A DNA stretch of 63,924 nt, counting the filler, from Lenisia limosa (lineage: Eukaryota > Protista > Breviatea): assembly GCA_001655205.1 (NCBI GenBank). It is 15 parts of 15 records of this genome, joined end to end, with 100 filler letters (N's around TTAATTAATTAA, not from the genome) between each part and the next. Parts side by side here need not be neighbours in the genome. Positions count along the whole stretch, not along the records: positions 61,433 to 62,810 come from LPNZ01002789.1; 14 more parts are not named here. The stretch is one strand, 5' to 3'. Below are positions 61,236 to 63,924 of this stretch, one piece after another (the first letter of the stretch is position 1; the number at the start of each line of letters is the position of its first letter). Made by a program: the position numbers and the translations under genes. The notes under the pieces are model-generated. The model had not been told where the DNA came from. It made no database searches and saw only the letters and a program-made list of their open reading frames with translations.

Positions 61236-61500
61236 CTGGAGGAAAATGAGGTAAAGTGTAGGGGAGAAACCCTGGTGAATGTAAAAGTCCACGATTAATT
61301 CCAAAAAAAAATCGTTCATGCCCTATCCTGGTNNNNNNNNNNNNNNNNNNNNNNNNNNNNNNNNNNNNNNNNNNNNTTAATTAATTAANNNNNNNNNNNN
61401 NNNNNNNNNNNNNNNNNNNNNNNNNNNNNNNNTTATTTAGTCGTGATTAGTGCCTTTACGCCAATATTCTTCATCGAACTATCATGCCCCCCAATCATAC

Positions 61501-61993
61501 TCGTGTTAGTAGTGTGGACTTGCCCACGGACGGAAAGCCAACAAGGCCGACACGGGAATCTCCGGACCTCTTTACATCGAAGCCCTCACCCGGACCACCG
61601 CTTCCCTTTGTGCTGTTGGTGATAAGCTCGCGCCTAAGCTTGGCAAGCTTAGACTTCAGAGACCCAAGATGCGCACTACAGAGTAAGAGGGAAGGTTCGT
61701 TTCGTTGCTTAATTACCTGGTAGCCTTGTTTTTCTGAGTCCTGGCCACTAAAGAGGTTGTGAGAAGGGCGTGGAATGAAGAGAGGCATTAAGAAAATCCC
61801 ACTTACTCTATAATTCGAGTTAGCATTGTCAAATTCGGGGTAACAAATAAAAAATTAGTGCAAATTAGGAGGTGAAAGCAACAACTCATGTATCTAAGAA
61901 ACCCCCACAGACCTCAGACTCGATCTCTTCAATTTTCTAAAGAAAAGGTTAAATTTATAGAAAACAAATATGACATACCTGAAGGATACTCAT
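61501..61993 (-). CDS. DRG1: Developmentally regulated GTP-binding protein DRG1/Rbg1, 5' part
   Basis: [43 protein letters not shown]...[37 protein letters not shown] favours DRG1 over DRG2. Confidence 0.95.
61807..61807 (-). CDS. DRG1: Predicted single-nucleotide exon (A) of DRG1
   Basis: Sense context tgctaactcgaattaTAG|A|GTAAGT. It supplies the missing base of the ATG in the conserved EMART motif. Confidence 0.8.
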
Positions 61994-63924
61994 CTTGCTT
62001 CAATTCAAGGGAAAAGACCAAAACGAAACAACGAAACCGAATTAACTCCCACTATCCGGGTCAACTAATTAAAAAAACCTTGAGTAATTGAGCTCGTAAC
62101 TCTTACTCTTAAAAAAGAGCTTGAATTTCAAAAGAGGCCACTAACATTTGATTACTTTTGATTATACAGGAACCCACCAGGAAATATGTCCCCCCCGCCA
62201 TTATATCTCTTTAAAGCTGAAATCCTTCACAAGTTGCACACAGTACACAGTATACCTTTATTGGCTGCTTGCTTGATTATCGAGAAAAAAAAGCAAAACA
62301 AAACAACAATTCTGCTGCAACATCTCGACATCTCGAGAACACTGGAAAGAAAAGAGTTCCACTAAGAAGCCACCAACAAAGCACCCTCGCACCCTCACTT
62401 CCCCCCTGGTTAGAGATATATGAATATGAATATTGAGTGAATATCAATACTTTGCTTTCAATTTCATCATGTTCTGTGGTTCTGTATTCCCTTTTCTTGT
62501 TTATACTTTTTGCAGTTTTATGTCGGAGTAGAATAAGAAGGAACAGCTGGAGGAGATGAAAGCCTTACCATGTTTCGTTGCCGTCTTCATGGCATTGCTT
62601 TTCCTTGTCCATGGCCAAATGTAAGGATGTCCTTTCATTAATCTCACTTTGGCCTTTTCAAGTGACAAATCACGATTCTTCTTTCTCTTCCGCTAATCTG
62701 AACGTGGATGGGTTGAAACTTGGGGATTCAGGGAATACTTTAGTATATTTATTCCTTCAAGGTCAAAAACCAGATAAGACTCCCCCCCATCCCAGAGCCC
62801 TGAACTTTGTNNNNNNNNNNNNNNNNNNNNNNNNNNNNNNNNNNNNNNNNNNNNTTAATTAATTAANNNNNNNNNNNNNNNNNNNNNNNNNNNNNNNNNN
62901 NNNNNNNNNNGGACAACACACGAGGATTGATAAGCCCAGGCCAGTCGCTTCTGCAAAATTTCCAAGTAATTTTAAAAAAACAACTGTATATCGTATCCTA
63001 TACTATTAGGAGTCAGAAAATGCTCGCATCATGCCAAACCATTACCCAAAATAGCCAAATTACCAAGCATAGCCAAAATACCTTGAGTTGTTGAACGGGC
63101 AGCGACTGGGAAACCTGCATGGGCGGCGGCGGGACTAGGGGCTGGCTTGAAGGGGTGGAGTTAATGCTGGATTGTTAGAAAGGGCTTTTCGCGGGTTTAT
63201 CGAGGATTTATCAGCTGACACGTCCCCATTATCGTCAGCATCACATCCAAAAGGTTCTAAAAGCCGGGAAAATATTGATATTTTTTGGCAAGTACTCCCA
63301 CAAACACTGCTTGGCTGATACTTTTCGGATAGGCGTCAGGAGCAATTACGAAGGTCGATGAATCCGCGCTACTACTTCGTGAGTTTTTGAAAAAGACAAA
63401 TATACATCCTGGGAAAGAAGAAAAAATACATCATATTATTGCACAAAATTAATAGAGGGCGTGAGTTTAGTTTACTTAAAAGAACAAGAAAATAACTGTT
63501 GTCAAGAGGAAAGGAGAGAAGTCCCTCATCAAACCCCCCCCCCCAACCTGCTAAATAAGGACGCTGGAGGCGGAGGGGGTGAGGGGGTTGAAGACACCTT
63601 GTGCATGCCCTAAACGGTTACAAAAAATAGAAATCTGGTTCGTCGAAGAATAAAAAAACACCGATTGTTATTTGTGTGATATATCATATACGCTAGAAGG
63701 GAGCGATTGATTTTTATTTTTTTATTTAAAAGAAGTATAAATTTTAATTGTTTTTATCTGCCTCCTCCTGAGGAGGCAGATAAAATAAGCTAAAAATAGT
63801 AATTTTATTTTATTAACCGCTCACTTAAAATATTTACTTATTAAAAGAAACAAAAAAAAAATCAATCGCGCCATCAGCAATATCCCCCCTCCCTCCAGGG
63901 GGCCAAGGAGTTAAAGGGGGGAGG

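Follow-up and report, generated by a model that had tools for sequence, protein, structure and literature searches.

In the DRG1 gene of the breviate protist Lenisia limosa, the 31-nt exon that follows exon 2 starts at position 61747, one base short of the reading frame. The apparent intron between the two exons, a gap of 165 nt (61912..61748), contains the arrangement tgCTAACtcgaattaTAG-A-GTAAGT with the A at position 61807, which leaves one intron of 105 nt and another of 59 nt, hereafter sub-introns a and b. An earlier note on this DNA had proposed that A61807 is an exon of a single nucleotide, restoring the codons GAG ATG GCC. Its coordinates and motifs (donor 61912, exon 61747, A61807 and the two intron lengths) all proved correct on the sequence, and the proposal itself was borne out by an RNA contig with one A between 61913 and 61747 and by a Lenisia protein that is identical across the site. 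We hold with high confidence that A61807 is a complete one-nucleotide internal exon located between two canonical GT-AG introns of DRG1, because the mRNA has an extra A, the genome has no A beside either flanking exon, and canonical flanks are unique to A61807.

Gene model and identity of the locus

Coordinates refer to the window, i.e. the whole stretch of 63,924 nt, unless a contig or locus is named. DRG1 is encoded on the minus strand, within the piece that spans positions 61,433-62,810 (LPNZ01002789.1), and it is extended by L001, a metaSPAdes metagenome contig from ENA (5209 nt) that is 100% identical to the piece. When the A is included as an exon, the DRG1 model comprises eleven exons and an unbroken frame of 299 codons that reaches the end of L001, with the codon of Met-14 split as A/TG. 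When the A is skipped, conceptual translation gives a frameshift and a stop 17 codons downstream. The parts of the gene, together with the junction k-mers of the different splice forms, are listed in Table 1.

Table 1. Features of the DRG1 locus in window coordinates, and k-mers diagnostic of each splice form. A slash marks a splice junction.
Feature	Position	Strand	Details
Exon 1	61979..62118	-	sequence and RNA contig piece 61979-62118
Exon 1, 5' UTR portion	62118..61994	-	as far as the RNA contig extends
Exon 1, CDS portion	61993..61979	-	ATG AGT ATC CTT CAG = MSILQ
Intron 1	61937..61978	-	42 nt, gtatgt...ttag; RNA contig joint 61936->61979
Intron 1, TTAAC motif	branch A 12 nt before 3' end	-	motif scan
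Exon 2	61936..61913	-	24 nt, AAA ATT GAA GAG ATC GAG TCT GAG = KIEEIESE; phase-0 end, gtctgt next
Sub-intron a	61808..61912	-	105 nt, GAG/gtctgt...ctaac-N10-tag/A; phase 0, at the Glu/Met codon boundary
Sub-intron a, CTAAC branch-site-like motif	61819..61823	-	branch A 61820, 12 nt before intron end
One-nucleotide exon (very probable)	61807..61807	-	one A, position 1 of the Met codon
Sub-intron b	61748..61806	-	59 nt, A/gtaagt...ctcac-N10-tag/TG; phase 1, within the Met codon
Sub-intron b, CTCAC branch-site-like motif	61759..61763	-	branch A 61760, 12 nt before intron end
31-nt exon	61717..61747	-	TG GCC AGG ACT CAG AAA AAC AAG GCT ACC AG, encoding (M)ARTQKNKAT(S); tttag just upstream; sequence and RNA contig
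41-nt intron	61676..61716	-	gtaatt...gtag; joint 61675->61717 in RNA contig
41-nt intron, CTTAC motif	8 nt before 3' end	-	motif scan
175-nt exon	61501..61675	-	reaches the G1 motif; sequence, RNA contig, homology searches
523-nt intron, start only	61433..61500	-	gtatgattgggggg...; truncated by the edge of the piece
Neighbour gene exons	62311-62407, 62531-62620	+	GT..AG intron 62408-62530; RNA contig
Junction k-mer, A included			TCTGAGATGGCCAGG
Junction k-mer, A skipped			TCTGAGTGGCCAGG
Junction k-mer, alternative donor			GAGGTCTTGGCC
Junction k-mer, sub-intron a removed, b retained			GAGAGTAAGT
Junction k-mer, sub-intron b removed, a retained			TTATAGATGGCC

Judged by sequence comparison, the gene is the DRG1/Rbg1 orthologue of L. 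limosa. Its product scores 508 bits against yeast Rbg1 and 395 bits against Rbg2 in a comparison with PDB sequences, the Pfam families MMR_HSR1, MMR_HSR1_Xtn and TGS are all found above their cut-offs, and the domain architecture (an N-terminal helical region, the G domain with its S5D2L insert, and TGS) fits the DRG1/Rbg1 subfamily of Obg-like GTPases. The 97-aa exon ORF as a query, the 58-aa exon used to scan metagenomes and a full-length profile retrieved no relative closer than about 74-79% identity, with a value of <=74% for the nearest relatives across all collections, and breviates besides L. limosa are represented by transcriptomes only. Nearly all of 80 metagenome DRG loci encode E-(M/I/Y)-ARTQKNKAT contiguously. 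A phase-0 intron between the Glu and Met codons, exactly at the position of sub-intron a, is present in the three plant-like DRG1 loci L035 (1854-2195), L040 (186-631) and L080 (~1230); both intron ends read GAG/gt...cag/ATG in the former two, and in L080 the acceptor side alone was read. These three loci are without an intron after the A, and an intron equivalent to sub-intron b was seen in none of the 80 DRG loci sampled.

Evidence from RNA and protein

Two public runs of a single 2016 study, a poly(A)-selected metatranscriptome (X1) and an apparent DNA run (X2), were inspected as assembled contigs; a repeated search for runs returned these two again. Upon alignment to the piece, an X1 contig of 1279 nt, with a depth of 108.6, matches every exon with zero mismatches and excises the introns of 42 nt (61937-61978) and 41 nt (61676-61716). 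In the same contig position 61913 is joined to 61747, the 165 nt between them being skipped, and exactly one letter is found at the joint. This letter is a T on the plus strand, hence an A on the gene strand, the positional ambiguity of the joint is zero, an alignment to a narrower stretch gave the same joint, and the mRNA across the junction reads TCT GAG ATG GCC AGG. In the genome a g directly follows GAG and a g directly precedes TGGCC, and consequently a single intron, canonical or not, cannot yield an mRNA with GAG-A-TGG; two joints are needed. In the genome, the single nucleotide between the two exons of the mature mRNA adjoins neither of them. The fully spliced form is the only RNA form over the site in the assembled contigs, which drop rare variants; no splicing intermediate, lariat or minor isoform was seen in them.

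The protein evidence comes from EukProt entry EP01086_Lenisia_limosa_P012256 (P0149), a 367-aa ORF of a Trinity transcript, which was retrieved with a profile built from a full-length proxy and DRG1's own exon translations (a four-fragment alignment). Over 299 aa this protein and the model with the A show 100% identity, the stretch ESEMARTQ included, which assigns the gene to L. limosa; an exact look-up returned no contig that encodes it. RNA of one study is probably behind both the RNA contig and the EukProt protein, and one library is probably behind both DNA assemblies, so that the agreement amounts to replication between assemblers and not between samples.

Splice signals around A61807

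Since a single nucleotide is untraceable by alignment, the assignment of the extra A to position 61807 rests on the signals that flank it. Among the 36 A's of the 165-nt gap, A61807 is the one preceded by AG and followed by GT, and three others have one of the two dinucleotides. When the gap was shuffled 20,000 times with dinucleotides preserved, AGAGT appeared in 4.1% of the shuffles, AGAGTRNG in 0.14% and AGAGTAAGT in 0%, and a yTnAC motif located 5-15 nt upstream of AGAGTRNG was obtained in 0.05%. The GTAAGT of sub-intron b is the closest to the usual consensus among the ten donors of DRG1. Likewise, a motif scan places yTnAC in both sub-introns with the predicted branch A exactly 12 nt from the 3' end, and the same motif is found at 12 nt in intron 1 and at 8-11 nt in four more introns, so that 7 of the 10 DRG1 introns (the two sub-introns and five at 8-12 nt) carry a tightly placed, fungal-like yTnAC. 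The shortest introns of DRG1 confirmed by RNA are 41-42 nt long, and lengths of 105 and 59 nt are viable. From this complete and improbable set of signals we infer that the extra A of the mRNA comes from A61807.

Alternative explanations

A genome in which an A had been lost would yield an identical mRNA. If the assembled sequence were wrong or polymorphic and the true one read ...ctctttag/ATGGCC, a single intron of ~165 nt would separate the exons and the internal tag-A-gtaagt would be coincidental; moreover, both DNA assemblies may share one Illumina library. Nevertheless, two assemblers returned the same indel-free sequence at 16-27x depth, namely the ENA metaSPAdes contig and a 1385-nt Logan contig of X2 that is identical to the window, and the loss of an A at 61747/61748 that the earlier note had considered is seen in neither. 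The site, tttag/tgg, is not a homopolymer, a combination of internal branch site, acceptor, A and perfect donor arose by chance in no more than 0.14% of the shuffles, and sub-intron b has its own CTCAC at the typical distance of 12 nt. We therefore regard a missing A as highly unlikely, the slight chance that we leave to it being due to the probable origin of the assemblies from one library.

Another possibility is that the genome is correct and the A stems from elsewhere, either by non-templated insertion or RNA editing at GAG/TGG, or from one of the other A's in the gap by means of non-canonical sites. An insert of 1 nt is unmappable by alignment and the gap offers 35 other A's, yet none of these has both an AG and a GT flank (the three mentioned above have one), and a canonical solution with complete signals exists. 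A-insertion editing of nuclear mRNA is not known in Obazoa, which also counts against editing, and this origin of the A is considered very improbable. The mRNA may also have been misread, in the sense that the main form would skip the A, or would use the donor GAGGTCT/gtgggg to give E-V-L-ARTQ, the A-containing contig being an assembly artefact. This donor preserves the frame. However, the sole RNA contig over the site carries the A at the depth given above, an independent Trinity assembly encodes ESEMARTQ, a retained GTCT is found in no contig, and skipping of the A leads to the early stop already described. In fact, the sequence GAG GTC TTG GCC (EVLART), put forward in the earlier note as an outcome that would speak against the exon, is absent, the RNA contig reading GAG ATG GCC, and an artefact of this kind is improbable in the extreme.

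Proposed order of splicing

Under the one-nucleotide exon reading, each sub-intron would represent a full unit, with its own donor, branch-site-like yTnAC and acceptor, and could be recognised alone by intron definition, the mode expected of short introns; the very short confirmed introns of 41 and 42 nt fit such a recognition of introns as units. The acceptor of sub-intron a and the donor of sub-intron b overlap within the ten bases tagAgtaagt, where simultaneous occupancy by two spliceosomes would be impossible, and owing to this overlap the two sub-introns are most likely removed consecutively. The order could be a then b or b then a. Once the first intron was out, a long exon would simply end in the A, and the other intron would be spliced in the ordinary way. 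As a speculation, occasional skipping of the A, with its frameshift and early stop, could tune the levels of DRG1 and act as a regulatory switch.

Origin of the two introns and neighbouring sequence

With regard to origin, it is likely that sub-intron b was gained one base downstream of an intron at the position shared with the plant-like genes, or that the two were gained in the reverse order. The position of sub-intron a, common to plant-like DRG1 genes, could be ancient or the result of recurrent or parallel gain. Both sub-introns are at single-copy depth in the DNA run X2 (26.7), and neither gave a significant match elsewhere in L001; an introner or MITE origin of the sub-introns themselves was rejected on these two results.

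The long introns located downstream in DRG1 are of a different make, being packed with repeats that terminate in G-runs or C-runs and reach the splice sites. In the six long introns (157-613 nt; L001:2293-5133) a G-run mostly comes within 10 nt after the GT, as in GTAAGGGGGGGGGGGGG and GTTGAGGGGGGGGGGGG, and three of the long introns end in a C-run plus AG. Units terminated by G-runs recur in other introns and intergenically, and the intron that starts at L001 position 2877 begins exactly at such a terminus. It looks as if MITE-type 'introner' elements supply splice sites in L. limosa, and the repeats that reach the splice sites of the long DRG1 introns point to a genome whose introns are being shaped by mobile elements. 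We put forward, as a tentative and rather unlikely idea, that the one-nucleotide exon arose incidentally from intron gain driven by transposons and still going on, in which a new intron landed one base from an older one at the position common to plant-like genes. If this were true, ultra-short exons of 1-3 nt should be common in the genome of L. limosa, which would then offer a natural system for studying in which order abutting introns are removed when the spliceosome works by intron definition.

Other repeats were observed in and around the 523-nt intron. A 38-nt core at window 61441-61478 is found on ~420 contigs of the DNA run X2, where its summed depth is 53650 as compared with 26.7 for single-copy sequence, and a short RNA contig contains it too; depth and contig count mark it as a dispersed repeat of very high copy number. 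The stretch made up of the last part of the 175-nt exon and its donor (CCACACTACTAACACGA/GTATGATTGGGGG; L001:2276-2305 = window 61488-61517) is repeated 108 nt downstream within the intron with 87% identity, and a second, weaker repeat lies 154 nt further, the two copies being located at L001:2384-2413 and 2538-2567. This repetition may represent a duplicated insertion site, or a tandem copy of an element carrying a decoy donor.

On the other side of DRG1, a divergent neighbour gene at window 62311-62620 on the plus strand is supported by a 994-nt RNA contig, and its next intron is filled with the same repeats as the long introns of DRG1. The start of its ORF, MKALPCFVAVFMALLFLVHGQ, looks like a signal peptide. 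No Pfam matches were found in the neighbour ORFs, which are mostly intron read-through.

Significance

The breviates, among which this RNA-supported one-nucleotide exon is found, are deep-branching relatives of animals and fungi, Breviatea being reported as the deepest branch of Obazoa (bioRxiv 10.64898/2026.01.29.702055). The case shows a spliceosome coping, in yet another lineage, with an exon of essentially no exonic sequence, and it does so in a host gene encoding a universally conserved and probably essential ribosome-associated GTPase, in which errors would be costly. Conceptually the case is a curiosity, and the mechanism is not new. In practice, gene callers and spliced aligners would mis-model DRG1, producing a frameshift, a truncated N-terminus or an invented donor, and the pattern described here can be reused in annotation: an apparent intron roughly double the normal length, a phase that is off by one base, and, within the intron, a branch site followed by AG, N and GTAAGT.

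Comparison with known systems

Two kinds of interlocked introns resemble the arrangement in DRG1. Recursive splice sites, or zero-nucleotide exons, occur in very long introns of Drosophila and vertebrates and leave no nucleotide in the mRNA. As in DRG1, an acceptor abuts a strong donor (AG/GTAAGT in their case) and two intron segments are removed stepwise; unlike those sites, DRG1 keeps one A and its introns are tiny, and a recursive site was rejected because the A between AG and GT is retained in the mRNA. Stwintrons, the spliceosomal twin introns of filamentous fungi, consist of an inner intron that interrupts a splice signal of an outer one, and nothing is left behind after their removal. 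They share with the DRG1 introns the interlocked splice signals and the consecutive removal of two introns, whereas the two DRG1 introns would be neighbours and a coding base is kept in the mRNA, and this retained nucleotide led to the rejection of a stwintron as well.

The closest parallels are the one-nucleotide exons already described in plants and fungi. In Arabidopsis thaliana, APC11 contains a single-nucleotide exon established by functional assays (Guo & Liu 2015, PMC4674806), and there as in DRG1 the frame of a conserved protein depends on an internal exon of exactly 1 nt, with a GT-AG intron on either side. The exon of APC11 is constitutive and was missed by annotation. In contrast to this plant gene, for which proof came from GFP fusions and mutations, the case of the breviate DRG1 draws on RNA contigs and sequence signals, and its introns of 105 and 59 nt are much shorter than those of APC11 and have fungal-type branch motifs. 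In fungi, the one-nucleotide exon of CYP621A in Fusarium is conserved across 20 orthologues and supported by SRA data (Nelson & Syed 2026, PMC12940212), and in Coprinopsis cinerea long reads led to the annotation of 13 one-nt exons, in thirteen genes (PMC12230235). DRG1 shares with these an AG/N/GT located in an apparent intron that is too long for a genome of short introns, junction support from RNA-seq and a conserved motif that requires the base, and the diagnostic logic is the same, combining the over-long intron, the rescue of the frame and an intron-less relative as a ruler. It differs from CYP621A, a fungal P450 gene, in that DRG1 is a universally conserved ribosome-associated GTPase. 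The DRG1 gene of L. limosa displays every defining feature of a one-nucleotide exon for which it was tested, and belongs with a known, very rare kind of exon, of which the literature searched gave no earlier case outside plants and fungi.
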